Below are positions 576 to 64,000 of a stretch of 64,000 nucleotides of DNA, one piece after another. Position 1 is the stretch's first letter. Every line of letters begins with the position of its first letter. A model generated the notes under the pieces. It was given only the letters and a program-made list of their open reading frames with translations. It did no database searches and was not told where the DNA came from. The translations under genes were made by a program, and so were the position numbers. Source of the DNA: Oculina patagonica (Eukaryota); assembly GCF_052425735.1 (NCBI RefSeq), contig NC_135760.1, positions 124,001-188,000 of the forward strand, read 5' to 3'.

Positions 576-1651
576 GTTAATGTGCGAATTTTGGATCTTT
601 ATGAGGAACTTCGAGATGGAAATAACCTTTTACTACTATTAGAGCTTCTCTGCAAAACTAACTTGGTATGTGTTCTTTTGACAAAACCTTCGCTGATTGC
701 GTCAGCTACGAGTTTCAACCGTCTGTCCTTGTTGACAATAAAAATTGGCCAATCAGCGCTCAAGAATTCCCTCAGTTATTGTAAAATATCTCTTAGTTAC
801 TTAATGCTGCAGATACTGCAATACGTTTCAGGGGTGTGAGTGTTATCTAAAGGAAATACTGGTAGTTAATATTTTGTCAGTGTTTCTATAGAGTTGTGTT
901 TCCATGGCGTGCATTTCCTGTTCTCCCAGAATGCAATTTCTTATCAGCGTTACTCAATATCGTGGCTGTTAAAATACCTTAGAATCAAGCTTCAAGATCC
1001 CTTTTCATTACTTTTCAGCCAAGAGAAAGAGGCCAGCTACGTTTTCACAGACTTCAGAATGTCCAGACAGCATTGGAGTTTCTTCAGTCCCAGCAGGTAT
1101 ACACTGTACTATAGCTATACATTTTAGTTTACTGTGGTGAATCTATAAGTAAAGTACTTAAAAAATTATAATATTGAGTTGGATAATGTACTCTAGGTTA
1201 TTATAAAGAACTCTACAATAACAAAGAAGTTATATTGTAACACTCAAAAGTAAGTTACCACCACAAGATGTGAATCGGGTCTCGTGAGGGGCCCTGGTTG
1301 AAAAAGGCACCTAGTCAAGTGAAGTTTAAGTGTCTTGCCTGAGAGCATAGCACAAGAACTAGCTGGGCTTGAAGGTGAGGGTTGTTTGGTGGGGGGGGGA
1401 AAGAGAAAAAACTGTGGATCATGAATCCTGACCAGTACATTTATCATTTGGCCACTGCACCTTCTAATTCCTGTATAGTACACAAACTGGATCTATTGCA
1501 ACTTCCCCTAAGTGCTTCAGTGCTTACTCAGAACCTGATGTAATTTTTTTTGTTTCAGGTTAAACTTGTGAACATTCGAAGTGAAGACATTGTGGACGGC
1601 AGTCCCAAACTAACCCTTGGGTTAATATGGACAATTATCTTACACTACCAG
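576..1651 (+). CDS. Spectraplakin CH1 (calponin homology) exons
   Basis: Exons 576-665 ([25 protein letters not shown]), 1019-1096 ([22 protein letters not shown]) and 1559-1651 ([31 protein letters not shown]); canonical plakin/spectrin CH1 motifs, all phase 0. Confidence 0.96.
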
Positions 1652-4600
1652 GTCAGATAAAACGTTTTTAGAGTGGTACATGTGCTGTAAACTTAGAAAA
1701 AATGAGGTCTTGCCTCCTGAGACCCCCTTGTGCTTTATAGAAATACATGCAAGCCTCCAGCATCTTAGTTCCAAACTTTTGTATGACACAAATGTACATA
1801 CATGTTTATACCCTTTTTGTATTTTCAAAGCCTTGCAGTGATGGGTGTCCCCCTTTGCAAGACCCCCACTTCATAAATGTGGATGTAGATGTCATGGTTT
1901 AAATTCATCTCTGGTTTAAAATTTTTCAAACCAGTTTGTGTTTTATTTTCCATTGTCTCAAATTCATTATCACAATCTGAAACAAAGGGAAATAAAATTT
2001 AAACTGATTTGAAAAATTTTGAACCAAAGATAAATTTAAACCACAACATAGACATGTAATGGACCTCCCCAACTTATTGTGGTTTTGAAATGTTAAAGAA
2101 TGACGTAACATCTATCAACCTAAAAGACGCTGGTGGTATTCTTTTTGTACTTCAGATACTAAGGAGACTGTATGTTACATGTAATTTGACATTGGCTTAT
2201 AGCAATTTAATTTGCAGCACATATATAGCTTGCAGGGGTGTGTTTAGCTATAAATAGCTCAAAATTTAGACTCAAAATTGAATCCAAAAGTAAGTGCTAC
2301 TCTTTTCAAGCTGCAAATTATCCTCTAAAAACAAGTCTTCCCCAGCAGGGGTATTTTGTAGAATGCGGAATGATGGTGAAGGAACGGCGATAGTATAATG
2401 CCCTATCCAACAAATAAAAGCTGACCACAAGCAAACCGCCGACCATCATTCTGTGTTCTGCATTCTGCATTCTGCAAAATACCCCTACAGGTCAAATCCC
2501 CCCTCAAAAACACTCTCCCTGGCAACTAGTACACAGCAGTTGATTTTCGTATTGATGCAGCTCCGAGTTTTAAATACATTGCTAACCATTTACTTAAGGG
2601 GTTTCATGCAAAAGCTATTGCTTGAAAATATATTACATGGTTCCTTGTTACTGTATTTTGCAGATTTCAGAGGTGGAAGTTGTTGGAAAACAAGGACAAA
2701 TGACAGCCAAAGATGCACTTCTTCTGTGGGCACAGAAAGTAACTCAGGGGTATGAATAAATTTTGATGTAAATTTGTATCAGACCTTTGTGTATAAATTT
2801 ACATCTAAAACGCAAATCATAAAATATCCAGTCTGTGTTAATTTTTTTCTGGAAAGATTAATTCTCACTTTTCCTTATAATAGTCAGAAATCCAAATTCA
2901 AACAAGTTGAGATACTGTACTGACAATTAAGTGCTACCGACTGTAATTTTCGAGAAAAAAATTTCAAAACTGCAAATTCGCATTTCTTCATATTCAGTCA
3001 AAAGAAACCCTTTGGTGAACTATTTACGAAAATGACATTTAAAATTTTCAAAGGGTTTTTATATTTGAGAAAATCAGCAAAAGGTGAAATGCCGTTTTCG
3101 CGTCCCCGCCGCCATAAAATTTTGTCGAATTTTTGTGGGTATTCAAAACACTCGTATGGAAAGAAGGTTGAACGTATGAAATTTATCTTTGGCATGTATG
3201 CAGGGCATCCAATATACTACACAGAAACCTAAAAATATTGCAAAACGATGCAATTACAGATCTTTTTGAAAGCCCGAAAATTGGTATTTTGAGCACTTTG
3301 GCAAACACTTGAAACAAGGGTAACTTTGGTGGCAAAAATCGTGTCCTGGTACATCGAAATTTGGAATAAAAAATAGATCGGCGTCAAGTACTATTATGGT
3401 ACTGTAACATATAAAAAATCCAGCCCGGGCAATTGAAAAACCACCCGTTGAGAGAAGTAAACGCATAGTGAATATTTCATGTATTGACTACAAAAATTGT
3501 CACGGTCACGCAACACTAGTACACACATTTCGATTGGATTTATTCAATGTGTTTTAGTTTTGCTCACTTTGGCTACAGTTTATGCTCGAATATAAAATCT
3601 ATCTATCTTATGTATTATTTACTGTTTTGTATTCATATCAAAATTAATTTTAGAGGAGGGGATAATTGATCTGACCGCAAAAATACAAAGGTCAAGTGTC
3701 GTGTCATATTTTAATACATGTACCGACTTTGCCGCTCGCACTGTGTAACTCGCACTGTGAAAGAAATAAAACAATTCAAAGCGAAATGTCTTCACAAAGT
3801 AGTCTCGAAGCGTGTCATATTTTATCCTGGTGGTTCTGTTTCATTAAATTACTAACTATTTAACACTGGTAAAAGTTACTTTTAGTTCCGGCTGTATCGA
3901 TTCTGTAAAGTTTTTCGAATACCTCAGTCTGTGTGTCAACAACATGAATTTTGCAAATACAGTATGTGTTCATAAACAAGATGATCTTATCGACAAGCGT
4001 ATCTATAGGAGAACATCGAAAAATGAAGTAACTGTGTTCAACTGTTTGTATTTCCTTTTAAGAGTGCGGGTCCTCGACTTGATATTATACGCCAGAACTG
4101 ATACATGTACATGTTTACCAAGAACTGCAAGAACTGGAATTAGATGTCTGTCTGAATGTCTGTTGATTTCCTGTTTAACAATAACAATAAAAAAAACACT
4201 CTTGGCTATAAAGCAAAAGATACTATACCACCAGCTTACCATACATGTCCAAACATAACAAGTAGCGATTCTCGGCTGGTTGAGCAACTGGAGCAAATAC
4301 CAAACACATTCGAAAAGGCGATCTCCGCAGCCATTGTCAGCCGTCGTCACGCTCTCCACTGTTGCAAGGCTGCCTGCCTTTCTCTTGTTTGCAATTTTTA
4401 CACAAGTTCTCTGCCTTTTTACCGCATTCACAACCAATCTCGACTCACTGTTTTTACCTCCAGACTCTTAAAATCAAATTCGATCCTTTGGAGAGCGAGG
4501 AAAGGGAAGGTTATATACGGGTGTTGGGGGGGGGGGGGGTAGGGGGTCAAGGTTTATTTTGTCATTGATCTTATTGTCCCACGAAGTGACTGACCAGATT

Positions 4601-7600
4601 ACCAGAATTGCAGAAGTAATCGTTACCTTAAGGTTGCTATTTTTAGCGGCTACTAATTTTAGCGATTTTTCTGAGCAAGATTTAGCGACAATGTAATTTA
4701 GCGATTTTCAGATTTTTTTTTTTTAAAAAAGACAGCAGGCCCTAGAAAAAAAAAAATACCCAGTGTAAACCAGTATTTCATAAAGTAATAGCTAAGATGG
4801 AAGTAAATGTTCAGTAAAAGAACAGAATCACTTGACGGCATTGTCAGAAAGAACAATGTTACGATATCCATTTCTTAAAAGAGTTTTTGATGTCGACTAT
4901 GATTAATTTATTTTCCTTTGGGGAGGTGGGAGGGGGGTACCAAAATTTAACGAGTATTAAATTTGAACAAGACTAATTTTAGCGAGTACTTAATTTAGCG
5001 ATTTTCTTGCTACTCGCTAAAATCACTAAAATTAGGAGCCGTTGAAAGATTGCAACCTTGAGGTATGTTGTTCTGACATCACCCTGGGAACTAGCTAAGG
5101 GTTGACCCTAAGACTCCCACTGAGGTGGACAGGAATTCAGGAAGAGAGGTTTGACTTAAAAAACAACAGCGAAAAAAAACCTTGTAGTAGAGAGAAGAAA
5201 AGGACCAACCTTGCAGAAAATGATTGGTCGGAAATCATTTCCTGTCTCCACTTCTCAGTATTTAAAGGTTTGCCCCTTGCCTTTTAGGATATGTGGGACG
5301 ATTAAATGCAGAGGGCCACACACCGTTAGGAAGACTTTGGCACAATTCTTTGTCGGATCTCACGTAGCTTGGAGATGCGTGTACTAGAACTCACTCGAGG
5401 TGTATAAAACAGTAATTTTAAATGCACGGCTAGTACGACGACACTTTGTATTGGACAATTTATTAGGAGCTAGCTTATGTGTACTAAACAGTGGCAGATC
5501 CAGACCTTTAGGAAGGTGGGGACCCCAATCGTGCTGACCTGAAATTAGCTCTTGAAGATGATTTTTCTTGGTCCCGTGGGCTTCGGTTTAGCCTAAAAAT
5601 AATGTGGAGACCAGGGCCCAAGGGCTCCTCCCCTTGATCCGCCACTGCTTTTAATAGTTGCAGACGAAAGAAGAGCTTAACTTGGTCCCGATTCATGCAA
5701 CTACATTCCTGGACAAGTTCTTGCAACAGGACCACATAAGGAGCCCTTTTCCTCACTTGTGGAACAGGAACAGCTAGTCGAAGTTCATTGCAAAAGAATT
5801 GTAGCTGCCACATTTTTTTCTTCGAAAGAGAGTTTGCCTAGACCATTTCCCACACAAGGGCCTGGTTTAAAAAAACAAATTCTGAAATCGCTAAATTAAA
5901 TAGTCGCTAAATCTTGCTCAGAAAAATCGCTAAAATTAGTAGCCGCTAAAAATAGCAACCTTAAGGTAACGATTACTTCTGCAATTCTGGTAATCTGGTC
6001 AGTCACTTCGTGGGACAATAAGATCAATGACAAAATAAACCTTGACCCCATACCCCCCCCCCCCAACACCCGTATATAACCTTCCCTTTCCCCGCTATCC
6101 AAAGGATCGAATTTGATTTTAAGAGTCTGGAGGTAAAAAGAGTGAGTCGAGATTGGTTGTGAATGCGGTAAAAAGACAGAGAACTTGTGTAAAAATTACA
6201 AACGGGAGAAAGGCAGGCAGCCTTGGAACAGTGGAGAGCGTGACGACGGCTGACAACGGCTGCGGAGATCGCCTTTTCGAATGTGTTTGGTATTTGCTCC
6301 GTTGCTCAACCAGCCGAGAATCGTTACTTGTTATGTTTGGACATGTATGGTAAGCTGGTGGTATAGTATCTTTTGCTTTATAGCCAAGAGTGTTTTTTTT
6401 ATTGTTATTGTTAAACAGGAAATCAACAGACATTCAGACAGACATCTAATTCCAGTTCATGCAGTTCTTGGTAAACATGTACATGTATCAGTTCTGGCGT
6501 ATAATATCAAGTCGAGGACCCGCACTCTTAAAAGGAAATACAAACAGTTGAACACAGTTACTTCATTTTTCGATGTTCTCCTATAGATACACTTGTCGAT
6601 AAGATCATCTTGTTTATGAACACATACTGTATTTGCAAAATTCATGTTGTTGACACACAGACTGATTAGGTATTCGAAAAACTTTACAGAATCGATACAG
6701 CCGGAACTAAAAGTAACTTTTACCAGTGTTAAATAGTTAGTAATTTAATGAAACAGAACCACTAGGATAAAATATGACACGCTTCGAGACTACTTTGTGA
6801 AGACATTTCGCTTTGAATTGTTTTATTTCTTTCCCAGTGCGAGTTACACAGTGCGAGCGGCAAAGTCGGTACATGTATTAAAATATGACACGAAACTTGA
6901 CCTTTGTATTTTTGCGGTCAGATCAATTATCCCCTCCTCTAAAATTAATTTTGATATGAATACAAAACAGTAAATAAAACATAAGATAGATAGATTTTAT
7001 ATTCGAGCATAAACTGTAGCCAAAGTGAGCAAAACTAAAACACATTGAATAAATCCAATCGAAATGTGTTTACTAGTGTTGCGTGACCGTGACAATTTTT
7101 GAAGTCAATACATGAAATATTCACTATGCGTTTACTTCGCTCAACGGGTGGTTTTTCAATTGCCCGGGCTGGATTTTTTATATGTTACAGTACCATAATA
7201 GTACTTGACGTCGATCTATTTTTTATTCCAAATTTCGATGTACCAGGACACGATTTTTGCCACCAAAGTTACCCTTGTTTCAAGTGTTTACAAAAGTGCT
7301 CAAAATACCAATTTTCGGGCTTTCAGAAAGGTCTGTTTAATTGCATCGTTTTGCAATATTTTTAGGTTTCTGTGTAGTATATTGGATGCCCTGCATACCT
7401 GCCAAAGATAAATTTCATACGTTCAACCTTCTTTCCGTACGAGTGTTTTGAATACCCACAAAAATTCGACAAAATTTTATGGCGGCAGGGACGCGAAAAC
7501 GGCATTTCACCTTTTGCCGATTTTCTCAAATATAAAAACCATTTGAAAATTTTAAATGTCATTTTCGTAAATAGTTCACCAAAGAGTTTCTTTTGACTGA

Positions 7601-10600
7601 ATATGAAGAAATGCGAATTTGCAGTTTTGAAATTTTTTTCTTGAAAATTACAGTCGGTAGCACTTAAAATCTGGTTGTCTAAAACAACAAACGTTCTTGC
7701 AATGTGATTGGTTTTCATCACTGATTGTATAATTTAGTAGGCTTGGTTAATTAGCATGGTTATACCAAAATTTTTATAACATGTAAGTATAAGAGTACTG
7801 GATATGTCAATGTTTGGTTGAAGTTGGCAAGGTTTACTTTACAAGGCTGGTTGTTTGCCAAAGTAAGTTAAAAATATTAATAAATAATGAGAATCTTTTA
7901 ATTAACAAAATTGACCTTTCCGCGCCGAGCACAAAAAGAGGACTGGGCATGAGTTTGAAAATAATACGTATTTCTTAGCTTGTTGATATTTTTTTTAATT
8001 GAATGGAAACAAGTTTTGAAAAGCTGTTAGCTATTAGAAATGTGATATCAGAGTGAGGTTTTGTTTTGTTTCAGGTACCCATCAGTTGCAGTTGGAAACT
8101 TTACATCGTCATGGAAAGATGGGCTAGCTTTCAATGCAATCATTCACAGATACAGGTAATTAAAGTGAAAGAAAGTCATTGAAAGTGATGTATCAACATA
8201 TACATGTGTCAAACATACAAAAGAGTGTTTCATCATATTTTCAAACACCAATAAGAGAGTTGAAAATACAAAGCACAGCAGAATATATTTGACCACAACT
8301 CTCACAAGTGCTTGATATATGTCCTCAATCGAAACTAAAACTTGGGAGAAAAAAGAGAAATAAAATATTGTAAAAATCTATGCATTTTTACATCACATAT
8401 CAAAACCACTGTCACGGTTCCATTTTGCCTTGTTCTGATTTCCTTTTGTGTGTTTGTTAATGGTACATTCAGCACACATCATGTTGGAAAGAAGAAACCT
8501 GTGCCTTTATAATTACATTAAATTGACAATATCTCTGCATCCAATGACAGGCCAGATCTTGTGGACTTTTCTAAACTGAATAAAGCAAGCCCTGAGCAAA
8601 ATCTGGAGTACTCATTTCATGTGGCAGAGAAAGAACTTGGTGTTCCCAGGCTGTTAGATGTTGAAGGTAAAATATTTTAAGATGATCATCTATCATGACA
8701 ACAGGTTCAACATTATCATGATGGTGACTTCATACAGTCGATTGCATCTACCTGTGAACGCACACGCTAAAAATATGTTTTCACGTGACGTTCTAACGTC
8801 TGCGTTTCAGGTGTCAAACTTTGAAGTAAAGCATACCGTAATGCGAACTTTTGTTCTCAAAATGCTCACCATAAACACTGAGCACGGCAAAATTTTACAC
8901 TAGAAATGATTCAAGTGAACTTGTGTATGCATATAGACACAGATCAGCATCATCACGGGTAGATGCAATCGACAGTATCGAGTTTTGCTGAAAAAATAAT
9001 TTAAAAAAATTGTGATCACCTACAGGTTTCAGTACACTGCACTGTAGATGTGAAGGCCCATCTACAGGCCTGTCTTGTGTATTGAAAGACACTTCACTTT
9101 TATAGCACCCCTTGATCTCCACCCGGGATTTTAAATAAGTACTGGCAAATTGTTTGGGCAACTAGAAAAATTGCCAGGGGTTATCCAACAATACAAAAAC
9201 ATCTTGAAGCTGTTTTGAGGCAGGTACTCAGTGAAGAAACTGAAGTGGGAGGGGCAGGGGAAGGTACAAAGAATCTTTTTAGGAAAAGCCACATTAAGTA
9301 TGTAACTGGAGACTTTTGTATATGTTTTGTTTGACAATGTTTTGAATGGCAGCCTGAGGCTGTCTGCCTCAAAAAATTGTTGGACTATGCATTGAAAGCA
9401 ATGTGCCCAGTAATAGCAAAACAAAATACTGACTTTTGTTATGTTGTTGTGGTAGACTTGGCTCACACAGACCATCCAGATGAAAAGTCAGTTATGACCT
9501 ACGTTTCTTCATTGTACGAAATATTTCCAAAAGAGCCCACTGTACAAGAATCACTTCACGATAATGTAAGTAGATTATGAATAAACAAAACAAAAGAGAT
9601 ATTTTTTCCAAATTGTACAGCCAGTGCATCTGCAGTAACTGGTGGTTAGTGATTTTAAATTGCAGTCACAATTTTTTTTTATAATTCCTATAATTTATTT
9701 TGCAGGAAAAGCTTTTTAAGTTTGAGGAGTATTGCAACCTGGCAAAAGTGCTTGTTGTGGATATTAACCGAGTCATACAAAAACTGGAGAGACAGAGGTT
9801 CCCAAAGACTGTCCAGGGAATTAAGGTGGGTTGAAATGAGAAGAGATAGGATTGGATAGAAGTGATAGGTTCCCACTTAATAAACTGCAGTATAGCAGAC
9901 AGACTACTTGCGAAAATTAATTGACTGGGTGTGTGATTAACAATTCGGGAAAAAAGGAGCCTTGACAAAAAAGGAGACAAATTAAGGCTAAAAGCTGTAG
10001 TTTTATTTTGAACCCTGGGTTATTGTACATCATATACCGGCTCCTTTATTTCCTAGTAGATGAAGTGTAGCAAAAATTGAGTCTGAGTATTATTGACCTT
10101 CCAAAATCATCCCAGTAGGCCTAACTATTATAAGCTTTTTAGTTTATTTTAGGCTGCCTTGTCACTTTTAAAAAATCATGTTATTTTAATATTGTTATTA
10201 ACGCATAAAACAACAATATCATTTTTGTGTGTGGCAAATAAAAAATTGTGTTGTTTGTAACTGTATAATATTTTCCTTTAATTCATAACATCTTTAGGAG
10301 CTGATAGTTGATTTCAACCGTTATCGCATCAGTGAATTTCCTGACATGGAAGCCTCTAGACATTCTCTGAAAATGGTCTTCCGTGAGCTCCAGGTACAGC
10401 GAATATTCTTGTCTAGTGGTTTAGTAAAAAATACAACCTCTTCACTCCTTCTCCAACTAATACTCACAATACAGGGTTGTAGCTAAGGGCCGGCTGCCAG
10501 CTTATTTCACCAGCTGACAGAGAACTTAAATCCAGCTAAAATTTCACCTGAAAACAAAGACTTAGGTAAAGTTTTAGAGCTGCCAAGGCCAGAAAAGCCA

Positions 10601-20100: not shown

Positions 20101-23100
20101 ACTGATCTCAACATAGAAGAGCTGCAGGCACATGGAGAGGTATGACCGTAGAACTTAGGAGGGTGGGGTCAGTAAGGAGTAAGAAATATGTTGCTTAAAA
20201 TTGTGATTGCCTTTTGTTCTAGAATCTTGAGTTTGACGTTCGAGAGAGAGAACCACACTATAACATGCTTCTGACAAAAGGAGACAATTTGATGCAGACC
20301 GGACACCCAGCACCGGGCCCGATTGAGGTGAGATTAGTTAATGCTACTTTAAAGCAATGGGGCCAACATTGAAAAATACCATTGTTAGAAGAAAACAGTC
20401 CTTCCCCAGTAGATCGTGGAGAAATTTAAGTTGAGCCGGAGAATGCTTGACCTGAGCAAAGCCCTCAGCCGCGCTGTCCAAGAAGGGAGGCTTTATTAAT
20501 TTAATGTTGATTTCTTTTTAACTCCACTTAGGCGTACCTGAATGCCATGCGAAGTCAGTGGTGGTGGTTAAACCAGCTTCTTATCGCCTTCCAGAAGCAC
20601 GTTAGGAACGCAGAAATGTACCAACAGGTTCGAATAGTAGTGTACTGCTTCCACACCTTAAAGCTTTCCATCAAATTTTTGATATCACGATGACACCTTT
20701 TTATTGGTTTTTCATGGCATTGCTTGGCCAATCAAGAACCAACATAGTCAAAGAAGAGAAAGCGTCAAAAGTAGACACGTGACGATAAATGTTGGCGCTG
20801 ATTGGATGAAAAGTTTGGAAAACCAACAAAAAGATGTCAAAGAAAGTTCTCACAAATTTATCACGCAACGGTAGTCCTCATGACTGTAACACAGGCTTTT
20901 GCTACTGTCCACTTCTAACACTGCGAAAGGTTTATTAGTAATATGTAGATTCTCTATTTGATTATTTTTGTGGATATTTTGAAATTTATAAAGGGCAAGC
21001 AAAGTATGTTGTAATGAATATATTTTTTTAATACGTTATCAGTTAAATTTCCTTTCAATGTACCTATAGGTTTTTAGTAAAAAGAAAAATGGTTATTCCA
21101 AAAGTTCATTTCGACTTAAATCTCCTGTTTATAAGGAATGTTTTTCTCGAATAACGTCAGGTTTTCAACATTTCGTATACCCTGTGTTCCACGAAACGTT
21201 TTTTTATGCTTATTACTTGAATCTCCATTTTAACTTTTCAAAGACAAAATGTATTTTTTTATTGTAATATACAGTATTTCCAAGACGCGCATACCACAGA
21301 GCAAAAGATGATTCAGTTGGTTGAACGACTGAACAGTGAATATGATGTACAGAACATCTCCACACGTGATACCGCTGAACAGGCCTTGAACAGGCTCACG
21401 GTAAGTGATTTGCAACTTGAAAACTGAATTGCTTAGCACTATGAATGTCAAAATAAGCCCTATGCAGGCTTAAGTCTTTGTAACTGCTTTATACGTGAAC
21501 TTGTTTCTACTCATTTGAAATCGCCTTTGATTTACTACTACCTTGCCTATCCGTATCTTCCTCCCACGCGCGCCCATTGAAAATAAAGTTCTGTTAAAAA
21601 AAACTCCTGGACGCCTCTTGGTGTGGTTATTGGACAGTTACAGATAAATCAATTCTTTGTGCACTTCCATACGTTACTTATTTCCCGAAACTGAACGCCA
21701 TGCGGTGAGAACTGTGTTCCGAGAGTAGTAACGTCCCATGATACGTTTCGAATTTAGCAGTCTTTTTCTTTTGCTACATTCAGCGTTTCTTTTCTTTCAA
21801 AGGGTCACTCCTTTTGGGTTGTTAACAAAGTATATCGTATCTGGACCGATTCAACTTAAACAAAATCGTCACAAACGTAAAATTACTGACACAAAATGTT
21901 TTGAATAAAATTCGAAGCAATCAGTCATTTCCCGTAAAGCTATATTTACGGATGTGAGCCGTTGTAGAGAATTTTTGTAAGCTCTCCTCTTGATATCGAA
22001 TATAACGTTTTTGTATTTTTCTTGGATTAAGGAACAGTCAAGGATCACAAAGAGGTGGTACCTGTATTATATTCCCGATATTTTTATTTTTTTATTATTT
22101 ATCAAAAATCAAGTCACTTTTTGACGTTGTTAATTTCAGAGGGTGGTTGCTTTGGGAGGAGGGGGTGTTACCACCGCAGGCGAGTCTAGAAAGCGTGGGA
22201 ACAGTTATAACTAAGTGAGCACCAACTGAAACACGTATCGTCTTGCACAAAAAATATCACAGTATTCAGGAGCTGACCTGCAATGAACTAGTTTAGTAAC
22301 AAATGGTATCCAAGGGTGAGTTGAAATACTCCAAGTCCTTATGTTCAAACCCACTTACTGGGACATCCGTGGCCAGCTGTGACCTGCGGCGATGGAAGAA
22401 ACTGGACATGAGAAAGGCTGATTAAATAAAAGCAGTTTTGGGTCGTTGCTTAGTTTCAGTGACTCTCTTCTTTGTAATTTTGGCGTCAAATGGAAATAAC
22501 TTTTTTTAAATAGTCTGAACATCTTGTCACTGCAATCATATATACTGGAGAAAGATACTGTCATTTGTTTCAAATCTCGTGAAAGTAGCGTAAAAAAGGC
22601 TTGAAACAATGTGTTCAGTGTGGAGGCGCCTGGTAGGCGTGAATTTGCATGAAGCCTGAGGCAAGTTCAATCTAGAACCTACTTTGAAATAATATATGCG
22701 TCCATTAAAAAATAAAACGATATGACCCGGGCACATTGACAGCTGTTTCGAATCTATCGAAGTCTCTAGCTTCGAAATTGAAATTACGCGTGATTAAAAT
22801 ATTAACTCGTGTGAGGTCTCACGTTAGCCAACGCCTTTCGTCTGTTTAAAAAGAAGAAAGAGATGCCTGCTCGCGGCTAATAGACAAACAAAACGTGTAA
22901 GAGAGAAAAGCTTTTGTTTGCGACAGGGTTCACTGACGCTTCACAAATGGTTTGCGAAATGCGAATTGTTCATTATCTGGTTACCACTTGCACTTATTTG
23001 CATAATAAACAAACTCTTGTTCGTCTTTTTACTACAATTTAATTTATAATAAAAGTCTTTTATTAAATGTTCATGAACTGTAGTTCTTTCCCTAGTACAC

Positions 23101-26100
23101 TTGCCGCTCAAGTTAGCTGGTTTTCTTAGAAATCATGGTATAAAAGTGCTGGCTATAAAGAACTCGTTATTTCAAAAACTTGGTGACGTAACATTTGATC
23201 GATTTAATTTCGCGCGACATTTTACAAATTTCTAGTTTATATTGATCTTATTTCGCGGTCATTTCACGCAGTTATTTGGATACCGCTTACAACTTCTGTG
23301 GTTTTATAGACCTGATTAGTGACATGAAAAACAAATTTGTGAGTACTTTTGCATTTTGTAGTTATTAATATTTCAATGTGGTGATTAAAATTCAAAATCT
23401 TTGTCTCTCAATTTTGCGTGTCGGGTTTCTACGTTAGTTTACGCGCGCGTATCGCATTTGCTATCGCTGGTATGTTTACTCGGAACGTCTGAGGGCGAAA
23501 TTGCAACATGGTAAACGGGAACCTTTCTAATGCTGGGAAGTAAGTCCAAAGGCTAACACTGGGGACAATTTTTGCTGAAAATATGAAGCGACTGATTGAT
23601 TTTGGATGCAGGAATCCGTGACTACCTGTGATGTTGCATTCAGTCAGGTCAAATCCACGTGTTGGCAAGCAGACTGGAGAACTTAGCACTCTGCTTCTTC
23701 GAACTTTGATTTTACATGGAAACGGCGGCATCAGAGGTCTAGCCATAACATATGCAAAAAGGCGCTGGACAAATTTTACTGCAATCTAAATAATCTTCGC
23801 GAGAACGCTATCTCGAAAGTTCAAAAATGTGTGTTGTCTTGCATTGGAATCCACTGCCACTTCTGTTGTTCATTTTGTTTACATCGGCTGTTGTCGCTGT
23901 CGTGGCGTTAATGTCACTTTTGTACTTCATTTACCGATCGAGGGACGAAAATAAATTACATGGACACCGACCTCGAGCGGTTTCCATAAGGACAGCGAAC
24001 ACTCCGCGAATATTTTTCTCCACACTGCTGTACCCTATCAGCTGGGTTTCGCAAATGATCAAAAATCCTTGCACCCGTGTTTATTTTGCAATCAGACGTA
24101 CACTCCACAGTGCTGCTACTGTAGTTAGATGGCGAACAACGCAGCACTCGACCTTCGATCACGACCAACTGATTCACAACAGTCGCTGGCAAAAGTTTCT
24201 ACGGGAGAGAGTGCTTCCTGCTTCGGAAGAAGCAGTTCACGCTGGAATTCCACTGGAAAATTTTCCTATTGTAAGACAGTCTCAAATGGGGACAATTATT
24301 GCATATTCTTTGGAGTACATACGCGATGTGTTCGCTCGAAAAGTTGACGAAAGCAGTGTTTCTGCACCGAAAGAGCGTTATGTGTTGCTTCTTCGCGGGC
24401 CGAAGACAGAAAGTGAAACAGAGTTGGAACCAAAGTTTAAAGATGTTGTCACAGACATGCTCCAGTTTAAGCAGGTAATTTTGCTATTCCTGTGTCCCTC
24501 CATAAAGTTTTTGATTGATTATCTCGAGTAGTCAAGAAGTGTGAAAATTTTGGCAAAAGCGGTCCGTCACGGAAATTGTTATTTGTGTCTGTGCCTTGCA
24601 AAATTTGCATGCCATGTTGTGATCGTTAGCACGCTCCGGTTGGCGCGATATTTCGTTACTGATCATTTTCCCGGGATGAATCGATGAATGCGATTTGAAA
24701 ACTCGAGAAATAGATGTGTGGGTCTTCTGATATTAGAACAGAAGTTGTTATATCATTTCTGTGTAGGTCTCTGCTGTTATTATTGAGTCGAATCGTCGAT
24801 TTGTAATTTGTAAACAGCGAAAGCGACATGTTTCGCGTGAGTAATTTTCCCATGGTGTTAATTTCATGCGGTGAGGTTCTTTTCGGACACGCGCGCTGCT
24901 CGTTCCAAAGACAGCAAGCGGTTCTATTTAATAAATCACCAAGTATGTGTAAATATTTGTTGAAGATTCACTTTCGAAGAACGTTTTATTGTCTTGTGAA
25001 TTTTTTCCACTCTGGTATTAAATTTAATTATGGTTCTCGAATTGTCTCTCTCTCGCTTTAATATCAAAAAGTCTTGCTTATCGTTTTCAGTTTGGAAATA
25101 GTTTTTTTTCTGTTTCTTTTCGTTTTATTGACTGGTGCACAAGATGGTGTTATTTCAGGGAAAAATAGAATATTCTTGTTCATGTTTTGACTTGCATATT
25201 TTAAAAAAAGTTTTATATTTATGCAAATGTTTTTAAGATCACAGAACATTGCAAAAGGATTTATTAATCGTTTTGGGTTAAAAGTGTATATATTTTATGA
25301 ATTGTACCCTTTTGATTTCAATATACACAATGCGCAAGTTTGCAATAGTCTAAAAAAGTAATTTTGAAATCTTTTTTAAAGAAGGAAATATGTGTTAAAC
25401 TCAGTCCCTTACATTTTTAAAGCCCAATGTAGAATAATTAATACCAATGTGTCCTATTCTTGTATTAGGGTGAAAACCCTATCAGCGACCCTAGCTTAAG
25501 TTGGCTTTGCAACTTGATCAGTACATGTTACAATCTCTAATGAGAAAGTTATACCGCTTAGGTTTCTGAATTCACTCTCAGCCATATTGATAGGGAGATT
25601 TGGTGAATTGGATAATTAGTTAGGTTCTACAGCTACTATCTTCTCCTAAAGCATTTTTATTTGGTATGAATTATAAGATGAAAAAAATTGCTGTTTTTAA
25701 TCAGGAAAGTGTGGTGTTTGACAAATTAACATCATAATGGTAGTCGGTAATATCACATTCACAAAAGATGATCCTGATGACCTTTAAAGAAAGTTATGCC
25801 TGATGGTAGAGGGTGTTATAAATGTCTTTAATTTGCATTGTGATCGCTATAAATCGGTTTATTTCTTTTGATGTAGAAATGGTCACAGTGTTAATAACTG
25901 TTAAAACAATATTATTGTTGGTGTCCCTTGCAGACGGGTTACATGCCATAATCACTTGTGTCTTATGCATTCTTGTTTTGTGGTGCTCCTTATGGTCTGC
26001 TTCCATTCTTTAATTTCCTGTTACTTTATTACTAATGATCCAATAGTCGGTATAGAACCCATAAGATCCATTTACATAGCTTAAAAAAACAAAAGGGCAC

Positions 26101-29100
26101 AAATGATAATGTGTGGTTCCAGAAAATATCCATACCCTCCCCTTGGAGGGTCATTGGAAATTCCAAGGGGAGGGGAGGTCATAGACATAAAATGTTAAAA
26201 GAATGTATGAAGTTTAACTGGAACTTCCAGAGGGGAGAAGGGGTTGAAACCAAAAATGGTCTGTGGGGTGAGTGAATGCATTTTCTGGAACAAAACAATG
26301 AGTTCAACGGGTTCAGCTTGCATGGATCATTCAAGTGTTCCTCATTGCCAATTTATCAGAAATAAGCAGATTATTCTAACATTACAAAATTGTTTGTGAA
26401 ATAACATATTCAATAAGGATGAAGATGAAGATATTACAAAGCAAGATTTGTTTTTCTTTGTGCCCAGTTTTTTTCTTACTGAACCTGACATACTGCCACT
26501 TAAACTTCCTGTCATATTTTCTACAGATTTCTCTCTTGCACTCTCTCTTGCACTCTCTCTGAACAGATCACTTTTAATAATTAAAAGCTAATTTATTTAA
26601 CAATTGTTGTTCATCACTAACACCTCTTAAAGCACGAGTCAAATCCTGATATACTGATCTCTTGGGCACTGTTTTCAGACGTGTGCTGCAGACTGCAATG
26701 GTGAATCCAGACCTTCGGATGGGGGGGGGGATCATCCAGACCCCAGACGCTAGAAAAAAAGGGGGATGCTCTCAAAAATATATTTTCTCAACGCCCTTCG
26801 GGCCTCTGTTTGTTCCAAAAATACGGTGGCGCCAGGGCACCCTGGGCTTCTCACCTAGATCTGCCTCTGGACTGTGTTTTCAATGCAGTTTTGGGTCATG
26901 ACACTGTGTCAGTTGGATACTGCCTCTGTGTAAACAATGCCTTGATTACTTGACAATATACAGTAGAAGCCCGGTAACTCAAACTCTGAAGGGAAACAAA
27001 AAACAGTTCGAGTTAGCGGGGTTTCGAGTTATCGCGGTCGATTGAATATTTAATTTGCAAAGTTAATAATTGATAGTTTACTGATATTTCAGCACTTCAG
27101 TATACAGTACAGTGCAAATTAAACTTATGTCGTCAGAAACTCTTAACACGATCATAAATTCTTATGATAAGAGTGGAAAAGGCTGTCAAATACGTGATCT
27201 GTTCGTTGCTCTAATCAATGGGCATCCGTGGTGAGTTGCAAGAACTGGAATTCAAGTTATCGGGGTAAATTTTACCCAAATTTTGATCAAGGGAAACAAA
27301 ATTAAGTTTGAGTTAGTGGGGTTTTCGAGTTATCCGAGTTTGAGTAAACCGAGTAAAAATGACTGAAAAGTGGAGTCAAATCCAAGGGAAATGGAAGTTA
27401 GTTCGAGTTAGCAGGGTTGTTCGAGTTATTCGAGTTTGAGTTACCGAGGTTCTACTGTATTGATATCGTTAGGAGAAAGTTGGTGTTGGGGATCCTCAGG
27501 AATTAACATTATTACAATTTATTTTTATACCAGGAAATGAAACAAGAACTAGTGGACTTTAAAGATGTCATAAGCTCTTTACAACTTCTGAGTAAGAAGG
27601 TGGTACCCTTGCCGCAAAGAAAATCTAAACTGAAAAGCAAACTTCTCGTTGAACCAGTGTGCAGTTACAAGAACATGCAGGTGAGTCTGGTATGCACTTA
27701 TTGACCTCATGGGAGAACTGAGCATGGAAAAATAACAGAGAATTATTTAGCTGATAGCTTTTCAGTTATGGTGCACAGACTGATTATAGCCAGGTCTGTG
27801 CGTCATGAATGAAAGCTGAATACTTTCCCATCCAGCTCTGCCTTTAAAGTCTGCAAGTCTTTTATCACACTTCTTTGTGTTAACTTGATTTTTTGAAAAG
27901 TTGTAAAAACATTTTGGTGATTGTTGAATTTACATGTGCAGTGAATGAATATCTCAGGTATGTGGGGCTGGACTTGCGTTGAAAATGTAAACACACGGCA
28001 CTTGGTTTGATATGCATTAATTGTTTTTTCAGAATATTGTCAACAAAGGTGAAGAGTGTCTTCTGTTGGATAACTCTGAACATCATTCTTGGAAAGTATG
28101 TATTTTTATTAATTACATGTATATTTTTTTTTAAACATTATTTCAAATAATCATCGAAAAGATATTACTGTAAGTATTTCAACTTAAGATACCGGTAAGC
28201 TCACATCACATTAAGGTTAAGACAGACAGACAGATGGTCATTCAGGCAGGTAGTCAGTCAGTCAGACACTGAAACACGGCCCTTTAGGGGTTTGATTTGC
28301 AGGGTCGTTCAGATGTTTTGTTCTTCTCAAAGTTTTCTTAATGTTATGGACCTCACTGAATTGCTTTACTTAAACTTATTACACTCCTTAAACTGTGATT
28401 AAATGATTTAATGACTTGACGCCTGTCTCCCCAGATCACAAATGCCAGCAGTAGACAGTGTGAAGTGCCATCAGTGTGTTTTGTTATTCCTGCTCCAGAT
28501 GTAGAGGCAACAGAATTTTCAACAAGGTAATGCTTTTAAAATGTGATTTTTATTGATGCTGTAAAAGTACTGTACAATTCAAATTACTGTACTAGTGTAA
28601 GAATTAAGTAATATATTTGATATTATAAGAACCATGATTTGTTCACAGTAAGTTGTTGCTGATGGTAGCAAATCAAACCTCTTGATGTTTATGTGTAAAG
28701 ACATTTTGATGACTTACTTTGGCTGAAAAAAAAATTAAAGTGAATCAAGAGGGATTAATTAATTTTGTTTCTGTAATATGATCTGCAACTGTTCATTTAT
28801 TTTTTTCAAAATAAATGAGTTTAAGATTGTCCATCACAAGGTATGTTTTACTGTGCTACACCAGTAATTTTTCCACATGTTTGTCTACCCAGGCTAGAAA
28901 TACAGTACAAACATTTATTAACACTTTGGAGAACAAGACATTGGAATCTCAAGCAAGCCCTCAGCAAAGAACAAGTCTTCACAAATGTGAAGGTGATCAA
29001 ATCCACATCTCCTGAAAAGGTACATCAACACAACTTACATACTTGTAGGAGGGTATCTTTGGTATGGGTGGAATGGGGTAGAGGGATCAGGCATGTAATG

Positions 29101-38100: not shown

Positions 38101-41100
38101 TGGGGCTTGTAAATATTTTGTTGCCTTTCGTTGTAGCATTTTGTTGACGACGTTAAAGATCACGAACGAGATCTGAAGGAGGTGAATCAGAGTGGAGAAG
38201 ACTTCCTACACGAAGCAAAGGTGACTGTTATTCATTTTCCTTTTTAACACAGTACCATTTGGAAATGATATCCTCGCTTACAGACCCATGCATATCCTAG
38301 CGGCCGGTCAGCTTTGCGTCAAATTAACTTGGAAACGCAAACATTTCAATTTATGCGTTTCTGACATTTCTTGATTGTGTTTATTCTGAAGCTTAAAATG
38401 ATACTATTAGGTTATAACCTTGAAACTAACAGCACTATAAAACCTAACAAGGATATTTACTGTCCAATGTACTATTATATACACGAGTTCAGGTCTTGTT
38501 ATGTGACTTCGCTATCCTGTCTTACTGAGAAATGTAGATACGATCATTGAAATCTTGAGAAATTGGCAATTTAACCGGAAATGGAACAACTTTTTGCAAA
38601 CATCATACTAACGCTTTCATTTCTGAGTTCAAAATAGTTAATTCTCCTGGTCAAAGGATTTGTGCTACATCAAGACCGTTTCCATCAGTTGACAATTGTC
38701 TTTATTCTCCGCACATGTCCTTTTGAACGTGTATCTATATTGTAACGAGAAATTAGATGTTGAACACTCTTTGAATATTACCAAGTGTCCAGAGGAAGCT
38801 TAATTGGGTGAAACTTGTTTTGCTTGAAGGTTTTCCACGCAGAACTCGAGCGCTCTGTCGCCACGTTAGAATCCGCTGATGTCAAATCGCCGACTCAAGT
38901 TATTCCAGATCCGAATGAGAAGTCCTGGGTACTAGAGAACAAGCTTGCCGATATCAACGAGCGATATAGCAGGTAAAAGGTGTTTAGTAATGTGTTTTTA
39001 ATTTGAAGGATACCTTTATCCGACCGACATAGCAAATGTCACGTATCGGCAGTCTTGTGTTACATATCTCGTCACGCATCCCTCATTATATTACATCTCC
39101 TACCCTATTGGCCTCCATCACAGATGTGTTTGTAAGCCCTCAAGAAAGTCTGCATAGGAGGCAATCATTCTATTGGCGTTTCATCCCCGGGCTCACATCT
39201 CACGCTTGTAACATCTGATGTCCTGCATCTAACTTGAGTTACGTTTCCTGACACACACCGTACGTGACATCTCCTGTCACGCACTCTTACATCCCTGGCA
39301 CGCATTCTACTAACGTTACATTTTTGTTGTGTTCCATCTCCAGGCGCGTATGGGGCGNNNNNNNNNNNNNNNNNNNNNNNNNNNNNNNNNNNNNNNNNNN
39401 NNNNNNNNNNNNNNNNNNNNNNNNNNNNNNNNNNNNNNNNNNNNNNNNNNNNNNNNNNNNNNNNNNNNNNNNNNNNNNNNNNNNNNNNNNNNNNNNNNNN
39501 NNNNNNNNNNNNNNNNNNNNNNNNNNNNNNNNNNNNNNNNNNNNNNNNNNNNNNNNNNNNNNNNNNNNNNNNNNNNNNNNNNNNNNNNNNNNNNNNNNNN
39601 NNNNNNNNNNNNNNNNNNNNNNNNNNNNNNNNNNNNNNNNNNNNNNNNNNNNNNNNNNNNNNNNNNNNNNNNNNNNNNNNNNNNNNNNNNNNNNNNNNNN
39701 NNNNNNNNNNNNNNNNNNNNNNNNNNNNNNNNNNNNNNNNNNNNNNNNNNNNNNNNNNNNNNNNNNNNNNNNNNNNNNNNNNNNNNNNNNNNNNNNNNNN
39801 NNNNNNNNNNNNNNNNNNNNNNNNNNNNNNNNNNNNNNNNNNNNNNNNNNNNNNNNNATACTTACGAATTTTAGTCATCGTTATTCAACGGATTTCTATT
39901 TCGAGCGTTTTTACACACTTGTTGTAACTGAGAGCGTTTGTTAATTTCTCGCAGGCTACTGTTGCTACTCAGTGAACAAGGAACTATCTTGGACCGCTCG
40001 TGGCGGCAGTTACGCGAATACGACAGTCAAGCATCACAAGTGTTACCTTGGTTAAACAACGCAGAGGACACACTAGCAAGATACATGGCGCAGCCTATAA
40101 AACCAGATCCCACAGCCATTAAACATCAAATCGGCGACCTAAAGGTAATCATAAATGAAAGGAAAACAGCTTTACAATGTTTTAACATCTGATCGATAAC
40201 ATGTTGCAACATGTTCGTAAAAAGTTTTGACAGGCCTAAGTAAAGCAAATTTTAGGCTTCTTGTTTAGTAGAGATTGTAGCGACGGTTAGGAGGGATTAA
40301 ACGTTTTTATACGTGGTTTGTGAAGCTGGCGTGAAAGGAGGGCCGAGAATATAAAACAAATATTTCAAATGAAAAAATGATAGAGTATCCAATCAGTAGT
40401 TTAGCAGCTCTCGTACGCTTTTCATTTTGCTGATCCTCTAGTGTAGCAGTTGATATTGTTTTTGGGGCTAGGGGCATTGTTCCTATTATTTGTTCCACTG
40501 TTCTCTCGAAGGAGAGAAAATAATTCATGTGAGTCGTTTGAGAGCTGCTACCCGACACAATCTTTATAGACAGGAAGCTAACCAGCTGACGGCTCGTGGC
40601 ACCATAGGGGGCTCGATTCTCGGACTCTGTATTACAAGACCTGTGTCCCAACCACTCGGCCACGTTGTGTCGCAAAGAAAACGAAAAAGGGGTCAGGAAA
40701 CTAGAGGAGAAAACTAACTATAAAGATCTTTTATTTGACTTGAACAGATGACAATATTTACCTAAACTAAAAAACACTGTGCTCTTGTCGACAATCGATG
40801 TTTATCCTTTTATCAGACACTGCAGACAGAAGTGAATTCCCATCAAGCGGAGATCGTAGCTGTTGGCGTGCTCGGTCACAGCATTGAAGGGTTGATTCGC
40901 ACCCCCGAGTTTGAGCGAGGAAAGTCCATAAATGAACGATACGACCAGCTGTGTGCAAACATCACTGTGTATCAGGCCAAGCTGCAGTCCGCTCTCACGA
41001 CGTCACAGAACTTTAAGGATGGACTGGATGCCACTATCAAGGCACTGAACGAGCTCAAGAAACAGCTGGACAAACTACCGCCCGTGTCACGCAATCTCGT

Positions 41101-62477: not shown

Positions 62478-62652
62478 ATTATATTACTATTACTATTACT
62501 ATTACAAAGACAAAGTCAAAGTCAAAGTCAAAGTCTAAGTCTAAGTCTCATTATTAGACTTATGACTTATAGACTTATAGACTGAAAGACTTAAAGACTT
62601 AACCCTAACCCTAAACCCTAACTCCTAACCCTAGCTGAGATCTTTAACCCTA
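62478..62652. repeat. Compound microsatellites (TATTAC, AAAGTC, AGACTT) and telomere-like TAACCC repeats
   Basis: Directly visible. Confidence 0.85.
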
Positions 62653-62677
62653 GATCCCTGTTTCCCTTTTTTTGTTT

Positions 62678-63010
62678 AAGTTCAAAAGGCTCCCCCCCAC
62701 TTGGCTTGAGATTTTTTTTAAGTCCAAAAGGCTCCCCACATCCATAAGGAGAAGTGGGGAGCCTTTTCGACTTAGAAAAAATACTCACACCAAGCGGGGG
62801 GAGCCTTTTGGACTTAGAAAAAAAGTCACCCCACTTTCCAAGCGGGGGGAGCCTTTTGGACTTAGAAAAAAAAGTCACCCCACTTTCCAAGTGGGGGGAG
62901 CCTTTTGGACTTAGAAAAAAAGTCACCCCACTTTCCAAGTGGGGGGAGCCTTTTGGACTTAGAAAAAAAGTCACCCCACTTTCCAAGTGGGGGGAGCCTT
63001 TTGGACTTGG
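62678..63010. repeat. ~48 bp tandem subrepeats immediately downstream of the 28S 3' end
   Basis: GGGGGGAGCCTTTTGGACTTAGAAAAAAAGTCACCCCACTTTCCAAGT units (62893, 62941, 62989...); the first two partial units are inverted. Confidence 0.9.
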
Positions 63011-63027
63011 GCCAAAAAAAGGTGTGT

Positions 63028-63839: not shown

Positions 63840-64000
63840 CCCATTTCACTATTGTTTGCACATTACATCCATCCATCACAGCCAGCTGATGCCACGTCAC
63901 TTGTCACGTGTTCACTCCACCATTACGCACTTGTTTACTAATCTTTTATAATCTTCTTAAGGTCACATTTTATTTTAGATTTTTAAGTTGACATAATTCG

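Follow-up and report, generated by a model that had tools for sequence, protein, structure and literature searches.

The intron between exons 21275–21400 and 27534–27680 of the Oculina patagonica spectraplakin gene contains an ATG-initiated open reading frame (ORF) that probably represents an alternative first coding exon of this gene (we put the probability at roughly 0.7), spliced to the exon at 27534 and giving rise to a membrane-anchored isoform that lacks the actin-binding domain (ABD). Judged from the DNA, the exon itself (hereafter, the lead exon) is real, coding, conserved, initiated by ATG, terminated by a splice donor, and syntenic with the exon in which the plakin SH3 domain begins. 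The first-pass annotation of the window, i.e., the whole 64,000-nt stretch of DNA analyzed here, had proposed such an isoform. Coding capacity, conservation, selection, synteny, the hydrophobic helix, and the lack of transposon domains all bear it out, whereas we still infer the splice partner, promoter, membrane insertion and topology, target membrane, and consequences for the SH3. The features discussed below are listed in Table 1.

Table 1. Features of the spectraplakin locus around the intronic lead exon (window coordinates).
Feature	Position	Strand	Evidence
CH1 exon fragment of the spectraplakin ABD	576..662	+	phmmer against PDB
End of CH2	9416..9577	+	PDB match and weak Pfam CH match
Canonical plakin-domain exon of 42 codons, both ends in phase 0	21275..21400	+	ag/TAT...ACG/gtaagt
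Conserved upstream block, putative promoter and 5′UTR	23327..23826	+	blastn, alignment, motifs
Candidate alternative first coding exon, 216 codons	23827..24474	+	ORF, 31 homologues, dN/dS
Predicted transmembrane helix (signal anchor), residues 9–36	23851..23934	+	KD19, charge, AlphaFold
Best-conserved region of the lead, residues 111–216, predicted to be cytosolic	24157..24474	+	dN/dS 0.03–0.10
5′ splice donor GTAATT after CAG, phase 0	24475..24480	+	GT in 10/10 loci
Conserved intronic AAATTTGCAT, octamer-like	24601..24610	+	95–130 nt past donor
Conserved donor-like element TCGCGTGAGTAA	24833..24844	+	about 360 nt past donor, 4 species
Inferred splice target, 147 nt, phase 0 to 0	27534..27680	+	acceptor ..ttataccag
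Middle of plakin SH3, conserved block inside its exon	28033..28107	+	SH3_10 positions 28–47
End of plakin SH3, conserved block inside its exon	28432..28527	+	SH3_10 positions 47–65

The host gene is recognizable on both sides of the ORF. The CH1 fragment matches the actin-binding domains of plectin and MACF1 (residues about 25–47, E = 3e-4), and the best PDB match of the CH2 end is the MACF1 actin-binding domain (4z6g, residues 205–233, E = 4.5e-5). The CH1, CH2, SH3_10, and spectrin matches surrounding the ORF all lie on the forward strand, the order of exons is collinear with that in the homologous locus L001, and the canonical plakin-domain exon upstream of the ORF is conserved in loci L001, L006, L007, and L009. 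Downstream, the exon at 27534 covers the final part of the helix ahead of the SH3 as well as the first SH3 strand; its last 24 residues (25–48) match positions 1–24 of the Pfam SH3_10 profile, and the block covering the middle of the domain scores 27.6 bits, above the Pfam cut-off. Hence, the original description of the splice target as the exon just before the SH3 is correct as regards its position but has to be amended, given that the exon itself carries the beginning of the domain. A sequence comparison of this exon with solved plakin structures yielded no match.

Re-reading of the sequence confirmed the 216-codon ORF described in the first-pass annotation, which starts in the context aaaaATG and extends to a CAG codon (24472–24474) followed by GTAATT. 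The corresponding stop-to-stop frame comprises 245 codons (23794–24528) and, past the donor, reads through to a stop at 24531. On the 5′ side, an in-frame TAA is located 11 codons upstream of the ATG, and the window contains only two AG dinucleotides between the two (23802–03 and 23818–19), either of which would give phase 1 or 2. Because of this stop and the lack of a phase-0 AG before the ATG, a phase-0 canonical exon cannot enter the ORF in frame and, with no phase-0 acceptor 5′ of the ATG in this genome, the ORF is possible only as a first coding exon. An internal cassette exon, following the canonical exons and inserting a hydrophobic segment into a product that retains the ABD, would agree with the intronic location, sense orientation, and phase-0 donor. 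Nevertheless, apart from the stop and the phases of the two AGs, the ATG is preceded by neither a pyrimidine tract nor a conserved AG, and conservation begins precisely at M1, the upstream ORF extensions of other species being unrelated, so that we consider a cassette exon very improbable. Consistent with translation from this ATG, a purine occupies position -3 in 10/10 loci, and M1-C2-V3 are invariant among the closer homologues.

Homologous ORFs were identified in other assemblies in 31 cases, with identities ranging from 92% down to about 25%; 28 of these are full-length at 48–92% identity and the distant ones share about 21–29%. The lead thus has homologues in both close and distant relatives, in keeping with the isoform as originally put forward. 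The dN/dS ratio of the exon is 0.10–0.17 and that of residues 111–216, a segment closed by a predicted helix (197–215), is 0.03–0.10. Across 25 aligned sequences, W121, V129, F146, P147, R150, A159, Y160, S161, L187, L189, F204, V207, D210, L212, and Q216 are invariant. In each of the seven loci with enough flanking sequence (the window, L001, L003, L004, L006, L007, and L009), the lead exon occurs once, always at the corresponding place within the intron; even in L004, a Tara reef metagenome scaffold in which the lead is only about 25% identical, it still resides beside the SH3 exon. Eight proteins (P0017–P0024) were considered as homologues lacking the helix, but the DNA encoding P0022, the one of the eight that was compared with its DNA, holds an intact full ORF, the short form stemming from the start codon choice of the gene caller.

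Such a pattern is hard to reconcile with a chance ORF, a transposon remnant, or a functionless pseudogene. The intron does hold repeats as well, and a degenerate 59-residue copy of the lead (P0032) is present in some assembly. However, by our own estimate from base composition (GC content of the 64-kb window, 0.40), only ~0.001 frames of this length are expected by chance per 64 kb in six frames, the dN/dS values denote purifying selection, and no damage to the ORF is seen even in the case in which gene calling had yielded a shortened protein. The transposon origin, which the first-pass annotation had kept as an alternative, is further contradicted by the lack of a transposon or any other domain and by the single copy at a fixed intron position in the seven loci. 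As far as sequence can decide, readings of this kind are refuted by conservation, and we regard them as scarcely credible.

The 3′ boundary of the exon bears on a different alternative, namely, that the exon belongs to a transcript that is not spliced to spectraplakin, either reading through the donor, ending by intronic polyadenylation, and encoding a free-standing single-pass membrane protein of about 220–330 residues or joining the donor to unrecognized exons, poorly conserved, of a separate nested gene. In 31/31 homologues reaching the donor, down to about 25% identity, KQ or RQ is followed by V, which corresponds to the GT of the donor, and similarity stops there: the read-through tails are 2–118 codons long and unrelated between homologues, and the four-way DNA identity, which is 0.54–0.83 within the exon, drops from 0.83 to 0.24 directly past the donor. 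Abrupt divergence beyond a retained GT is the signature of a used donor rather than of a C-terminal tail, although the strength of the donor is middling in several species (GTAATT, GTCTGT, GTCGGT). The donor is in phase with the exon at 27534, as stated from the outset, because the canonical exon upstream likewise ends in phase 0. In 7/7 loci, the lead exon is found 1.4–3.4 kb 5′ of the same 147-nt phase-0 exon, which is the first conserved coding block to follow on that strand and has a pyrimidine-rich AG acceptor; locus comparisons revealed no further conserved coding block between the two. The only compatible conserved target is the exon at 27534, 24 residues before the SH3, and not the actin-binding domain. 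Also in favor of this splice partner, F204, V207/V208, and M211/L212 are strongly conserved hydrophobic residues spaced by 3–4 positions, and in our reading of the alignment, F204, V208, and M211 match the heptad register of the helix that opens the exon at 27534.

In favor of a transcript unspliced to spectraplakin, the databases contain only unspliced versions of the ORF, although these are databases in which transcripts could not be detected, and conserved non-coding islands (24601–24610 and 24833–24844) follow the exon. All 31 homologues are unspliced genomic ORFs, but the protein searches were limited in length and would miss the long ORFs expected of transcripts, so that their negative outcome weighs little. 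A degenerate DNA pattern spanning the proposed junction gave 0 matches among JGI metagenome contigs; the canonical-junction control likewise gave 0, so that this collection is uninformative on splicing. When a 62-residue junction peptide was searched against 5.8 billion proteins, only half-length matches were obtained, corresponding to unspliced lead exons or to unspliced 27534-type exons with intron read-through, and no spliced canonical fragments were recovered either. With P0001 as the query (334 aa, region 1–216) and candidates of up to 584 aa, the longest match was 352 aa. Logan contigs carrying the exon were considered as transcripts, but they are plainly genomic because they measure about 4.2 kb and have similar ends in ten sequencing runs. 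Weighing these observations against the retained donor, the divergence past it, and the linkage to the SH3 exon with matching phase, we deem a transcript unspliced to spectraplakin unlikely. Should the splice not be confirmed, the ORF would remain an unannotated, strongly conserved exon of a membrane protein nested in a giant gene.

Conservation extends into the non-coding DNA on both sides of the exon. The blastn alignment of the window with L007 spans 23331–24478, about 500 nt 5′ of the exon being conserved, and the four-way identity is 0.28–0.48 within this upstream block vs 0.08–0.18 farther upstream. The block includes an AT-rich TAAT-type region (23327–23426), an invariant CCACGTGT (23655–23662), and CATATGC (23749–23755), and in four species, the latter two motifs keep a fixed distance to the ATG (-166 to -179 and -75 to -80, respectively). 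We take the block as a putative promoter and 5′UTR of the lead exon. Past the donor, AAATTTGCAT is exactly conserved in the window, L006, L007, L008, L009, and L003, and the four-way identity reaches 0.58 over positions 24825–24874 around TCGCGTGAGTAA; the frame of an ATG that precedes the latter element is not conserved.

The most conspicuous feature of the encoded protein is its N-terminal hydrophobic segment. Residues 9–36 form a run of 28 residues free of D, E, K, R, Q, and N, with a 19-residue Kyte-Doolittle mean (KD19) of 2.74, and a hydrophobic N-terminal helix is found in 25/25 aligned homologues (KD19 2.3–3.0). In all of these, 0–1 lysines and arginines precede the helix and 4–8 are present in the 15 residues that follow it, so the positive-inside character noted at first sight is retained throughout; this charge pattern holds in two distant sequences that share no sequence within the hydrophobic segment. 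The segment has the properties of a type III (N-exo/C-cyto) signal anchor, i.e., a helix of at least 19 residues with a positive flank only on the C-terminal side, which predicts that the N-terminus is outside and the C-terminus cytosolic. In the AlphaFold model, a helix at residues 10–44 (pLDDT 80–94 over residues 11–40) is the only confident element. For a signal anchor of the mitochondrial outer membrane, we would presume a shorter and less hydrophobic helix.

If the segment were instead cleaved off as a signal peptide, or were an anchor of the monotopic or hairpin type, this would agree with its location at the extreme N-terminus of the coral sequences, the topology being a prediction. The core of a signal peptide comprises 7–15 residues, however, whereas the uncharged run covers 27–29 residues in most homologues and 20–23 in the three most divergent ones. 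Furthermore, the basic cluster comes after the segment with no basic residue before it, and in two distant homologues, the segment is preceded by 9–22 polar or acidic residues. Given also that we see no biological role for a spectraplakin rod inside a lumen, a cleaved or non-spanning N-terminus appears quite improbable.

Searches for relatives of the lead were negative across several resources. Pfam returned no domain, only a sub-threshold match to DUF3302 over the hydrophobic helix; a profile search of the PDB retrieved membrane helices only (E of at least 0.48); and in the ESM Atlas, no score exceeded 0.65, the matches being small membrane proteins of viruses and eukaryotes that span the membrane once and show no sign of kinship. 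When 1.84 billion representative proteins were searched with a profile, 8 short ORFs were recovered, none of them from a long spectraplakin, and no bilaterian relatives were detected. The absence of such relatives fits the independent evolution suggested by the first-pass annotation and, in particular, an origin independent of the dystonin-a2 lead. The possibility that the lead is a duplicate of the canonical exon it would replace was rejected (hhalign probability 0.1%). AlphaFold2 run with 25 sequences gave a mean pLDDT of 53, with no confident fold in the cytosolic part. Residues 111–216 thus appear to constitute a new protein module without relatives in Pfam, PDB, or the Atlas.

Under the preferred reading of the ORF as an alternative first coding exon, transcription would start within the intron, probably from a promoter in 23327–23826, translation would begin at the ATG at 23827, and the CAG/GTAATT donor (24474/24475) would be joined to exon 27534, with phase 0 preserved. 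The product would begin with an 8-residue stub, a single transmembrane helix (residues 9–36), and a basic juxtamembrane stretch, followed by about 180 cytosolic residues, the last 105 or so highly conserved, and then by the last 24 residues of the pre-SH3 helix, the SH3, the remainder of the plakin domain, and the rod. It would lack CH1 and CH2 along with all plakin-domain exons 5′ of 27534, exon 21275–21400 being bypassed; by homology with plectin and VAB-10, the loss would encompass the spectrin repeats up to SR4, helix 1 of SR5, and the start of its helix 2. The protein would be held in a membrane, its rod lying on the cytosolic side, and would link the membrane, instead of actin, to the C-terminal binding partners of the gene; its SH3 would be either permanently exposed or shielded by lead residues 111–216. 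We lean slightly toward the more specific view that this is an ancient cnidarian isoform that arose independently of vertebrate dystonin-a2 and plectin 1b, in which an intronic promoter drives a 216-residue anchored module, unlike all known domains, that enters the protein in SR5 and directly tethers a membrane, without actin, to the microtubule-binding end of the protein.

Spectraplakins diversify through alternative N-termini, and to our knowledge, every lead described so far either enters the protein no later than the actin-binding domain or yields a plain plakin devoid of the ABD; we found no paper on cnidarian spectraplakin isoforms. The closest parallel is dystonin-a2 (BPAG1a2), in which, as proposed for the coral lead, an alternative first exon encodes an N-terminal hydrophobic membrane segment, which places the giant linker on membranes of the nuclear envelope, the perinuclear ER, and the Golgi (PMC3308695; PMC3352950), although the claim that this segment is transmembrane is itself disputed (10.1101/122010). 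In dystonin-a2, however, the actin-binding domain and a complete plakin domain come after the lead, whereas the coral lead would take the place of the ABD and of the plakin domain's first half. The coral lead is, moreover, much longer (216 residues with a conserved cytosolic module of its own) and shows no sequence relationship to its dystonin counterpart in the profile search of 1.84 billion representatives or in Pfam, PDB, and the Atlas. Similarly, a sequence encoded by the first exon of plectin 1b anchors that plakin in the mitochondrial outer membrane (PMC8468861), a likeness in that an N-terminus from a first exon attaches a plakin to an organelle; yet, the plectin 1b lead has 37 residues and precedes the actin-binding domain, whereas the coral lead would join in the middle of the plakin domain. 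Isoforms without either CH domain arise from internal promoters in BPAG1e and Drosophila Shot type D (PMC3352950; 10.1101/122010). Unlike the proposed coral isoform, BPAG1e has its plakin domain in full and is not anchored in a membrane, and in Shot type D the plakin domain is probably missing entirely; neither of them begins inside SR5 beside the SH3.

The inferred point of entry is of interest in light of the structure of plectin and VAB-10, in which the SH3 is embedded in SR5 and occluded by contacts with SR4, unmasking by force having been proposed (10.1101/681072). The exon at 27534 likewise supplies the final part of the helix ahead of an SR5-embedded SH3 but, in contrast to plectin and VAB-10, SR4 and helix 1 of SR5 would be constitutively absent from the coral isoform. 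If the isoform is confirmed, it would represent a natural construct in which the debated and normally occluded plakin SH3 is devoid of SR4, making the idea of a masked SH3 as a mechanosensor testable in a non-bilaterian animal, and would be the third independent case of a plakin anchored to a membrane through its first exon, after dystonin-a2 and plectin 1b. If, in addition, the divergent relative in L004 comes from a different class of cnidarians, the isoform would be older than the separation of these classes.

The lead exon, a candidate alternative first exon of the spectraplakin gene, is an ORF at positions 23827-24474 (plus strand) that starts with ATG, spans 216 codons and ends with CAG followed by GTAATT. 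The surrounding stop-to-stop frame comprises 245 codons; by our estimate, about 0.001 chance frames of this length are expected per 64 kb over six frames at the GC content of the window (0.40). The ORF lies within an intron of a plus-strand gene with CH1, CH2, SH3_10 and spectrin-repeat matches, the last located 3′ of the SH3_10 blocks. Re-examination of the ORF, donor, intron position and phase showed that the first-pass annotation had described each of them correctly. Its placement of the target exon just before the SH3 domain was right as to position and needs one refinement, namely, that exon 27534 itself encodes the first SH3 strand.

Features of the spectraplakin locus and of the adjacent ribosomal DNA
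Feature	Positions	Strand	Remarks
CH1	576-662	+	resembles plectin and MACF1 actin-binding domains
CH2 end	9416-9577	+	resembles plectin and MACF1 actin-binding domains
Canonical exon 5′ of the lead-bearing intron	21275-21400	+	42 codons, ends ACG/gtaagt, phase 0
Exon 3′ of the lead-bearing intron	27534-27680	+	147 nt, both ends phase 0
SH3_10 (Pfam), profile positions 1-24	27534-27680	+	
SH3_10 (Pfam), profile positions 28-47	28033-28107	+	
SH3_10 (Pfam), profile positions 47-65	28432-28527	+	
28S rRNA, 5′ part	56793-57597	-	
5.8S rRNA	57838-57991	-	
18S rRNA	58216-59964	-	broken by N run 59311-59453
28S rRNA, 3′ end	63028-64000	-	

A search against 5.8 billion proteins yielded 28 matches to the lead, mostly with 100% query coverage and identities from 92% to 48%; two distant clusters, P0031 and P0033 (~21-29% identity), emerged in addition when 1.84 billion representatives were searched with a profile. 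In all 31 homologues that reach the exon end, similarity halts at KQ, replaced by RQ in the distant members; the V that comes next corresponds to the GT of the splice donor. Further downstream the sequences are unrelated and meet stops after 2-118 codons. These homologues are genomic ORFs continuing into the intron. At the other end, the closer homologues all begin with M-C-V, and ORF extensions 5′ of the ATG are unrelated in two species. In 10 of 10 loci whose DNA was compared, the last codon is followed by GT, and position -3 relative to the ATG holds a purine. Absence of the N-terminus from some homologues is a gene-caller artefact at least for protein P0022, the full frame being present at its locus, L009. 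Conservation in relatives, proposed earlier as a check, extends across 31 homologues; dN/dS (Nei-Gojobori, four closest species) is 0.10-0.17 for the whole exon, rising to 0.28-0.36 over residues 1-40 and falling to 0.03-0.10 over residues 111-216. When the DNA of four species is aligned, invariant columns make up a fraction of 0.54-0.83 within the exon, 0.24 in the first 50 nt past the donor and 0.28-0.48 over the greater part of the 500 nt leading up to the ATG. On these comparative grounds, the lead is a conserved coding exon. A 59-aa protein, P0032, corresponds to the last ~58 lead residues in degenerate form, with many radical substitutions, and may represent a decayed duplicate in some assembly. 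No relatives of the cytosolic part were found in Pfam, PDB or ESM Atlas, and comparison of the lead with the canonical exon that it replaces revealed no kinship, so that an origin as a copy of that exon was rejected.

The predicted N-terminal membrane segment with a cytosolic C-terminus, also part of the first-pass annotation, is borne out by hydrophobicity and charge pattern in all 25 aligned homologues. Each has a single hydrophobic segment (19-residue Kyte-Doolittle mean 2.3-3.0; next-best segment ≤1.06), with 0-1 Lys/Arg before it and 4-8 within 15 residues after it. The two distant homologues have no sequence in common with the corals here, yet the feature persists in them, preceded by 9-22 polar or acidic residues. 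Most homologues have an uncharged run of 27-29 residues, the three most divergent one of 20-23. This length and the distribution of charges speak against a cleaved signal peptide; they favour an uncleaved signal anchor whose N-terminus is outside and whose C-terminus faces the cytosol. The sole confident element in the AlphaFold2 model is a helix at residues 10-44 (pLDDT 80-94 over 11-40); a C-terminal helix at 197-215 has pLDDT ~60, and most of the remainder is below 50.

Could the lead instead be an internal cassette exon? The ATG is preceded, 11 codons upstream, by an in-frame TAA; an exon opened at either of the two intervening AG dinucleotides would be in phase 1 or 2, and the canonical exon ends in phase 0; together these exclude an in-frame cassette, and judged by its sequence the lead can serve in the window only as a first coding exon. 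Translated comparison with locus L001 (50% identity in the lead) showed all plakin-domain exons to be collinear, with the lead between the 21275-type and 27534-type exons, as also in L003, L006, L007 and L009. L004, a very divergent reef metagenome scaffold, begins 1.3 kb 5′ of the lead; downstream of the lead it carries the 27534-type exon and then three more SH3 and plakin exons. In seven of seven loci the next exon is found 1.4-3.4 kb past the lead, is 147 nt long, runs from phase 0 to phase 0 and is preceded by a pyrimidine-rich AG acceptor; no further conserved coding block was detected in between in the window, L001, L004 or the other compared loci. Exon 27534 is accordingly the sole plausible splice partner. 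The last lead helix carries strongly conserved hydrophobic residues (F204, V207/V208, M211/L212) spaced by 3-4 residues, and F204, V208 and M211 appear largely in register with hydrophobic positions of the helix opening exon 27534, which lends soft support to the junction. In L009, a reverse-transcriptase ORF (5385-6614, RVT_1, 409 aa) lies in the intron 3′ of the canonical exon, before the lead, and may account for a spacing of 5.0 kb versus 2.4-3.2 kb in the others.

No search recovered a spliced sequence. Exact-match scans of JGI metagenome contigs returned neither the alternative junction (0) nor the canonical control (0), and because the latter is likewise missing these DNA scans are no test of splicing. 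A 62-residue junction-spanning query matched unspliced halves only, and a search reaching 584-residue candidates gave a longest match of 352 aa; both protein searches were length-limited and lacked a canonical control. Logan contigs bearing the lead exon are genomic.

The window and L007 (81% lead protein identity) are similar in DNA from ~500 nt 5′ of the ATG as far as the donor. Two motifs precede the ATG in four species, CCACGTGT by 166-179 nt and CATATGC by 75-80 nt. An AT-rich block (23327-23426; ~400-500 nt 5′ of the ATG) with TAAT-type cores AGTTATTAATATT and GGTGATTAAAATTCAAAAT is kept in both L006 and L007 and, in part, in L009. These elements form a putative promoter of the lead. In the intron past the lead, an octamer-like AAATTTGCAT (24601-24610) is exact in six loci of five species, including L003, and a donor-like TCGCGTGAGTAA (24833-24844) is found in four species, preceded by an ATG whose frame is not conserved in L007. 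The two could represent a regulatory element or a further non-coding first exon, in which case translation would begin at ATG 27537.

Taken together, the interpretation put forward in the first-pass annotation, a membrane-anchored alternative start spliced to exon 27534, is the best supported, with a probability of roughly 0.7; its central step, the splice, is deduced by comparing genomes. A protein made in this way would contain neither the actin-binding domain nor anything encoded by the plakin-domain exons that precede 27534, and the rod and the parts beyond the window would hang from a membrane. The SH3 of plectin and of VAB-10 sits within SR5, after its first two helices, and SR4 covers the SH3 binding face (10.1101/681072; PMC8468861). 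By homology, all that the coral isoform would retain of these helices is the final 24 residues of the second; either its SH3 would be constitutively uncovered, or lead residues 111-216 would stand in for the missing helices.

Alternative first exons are well known in spectraplakins and plectin (PMC3352950; 10.1101/122010; PMC8468861). Dystonin-a2 has an N-terminal transmembrane lead targeting nuclear envelope, ER and Golgi membranes (PMC3308695), although this segment is disputed (10.1101/122010), and plectin 1b is anchored in the mitochondrial outer membrane by a 37-residue lead (PMC8468861). The coral lead would act like these two, as a membrane lead, yet in the search of 1.84 billion representatives with its profile it proved homologous to neither. 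An actin-binding domain is missing from BPAG1e and from Shot type D (PMC3352950; 10.1101/122010). Unlike all four isoforms, the coral lead would join inside the plakin domain, and it carries a long conserved cytosolic module. We found no paper on cnidarian spectraplakin isoforms.

Elsewhere in the gene, the intron that separates the CH1 exon from that of CH2 contains a large inverted repeat (2927-4544 and 6046-7667) with arms of ~1.6 kb, 95-99% complementary and bearing mirrored ORFs, and a run of 500 N (39358-39857) is flanked on both sides by spectrin-repeat exons. Directly after the giant exon of the spectraplakin gene lies a minus-strand ribosomal DNA unit (56793-64000), which could reflect an assembly join or an rDNA fragment within the gene.
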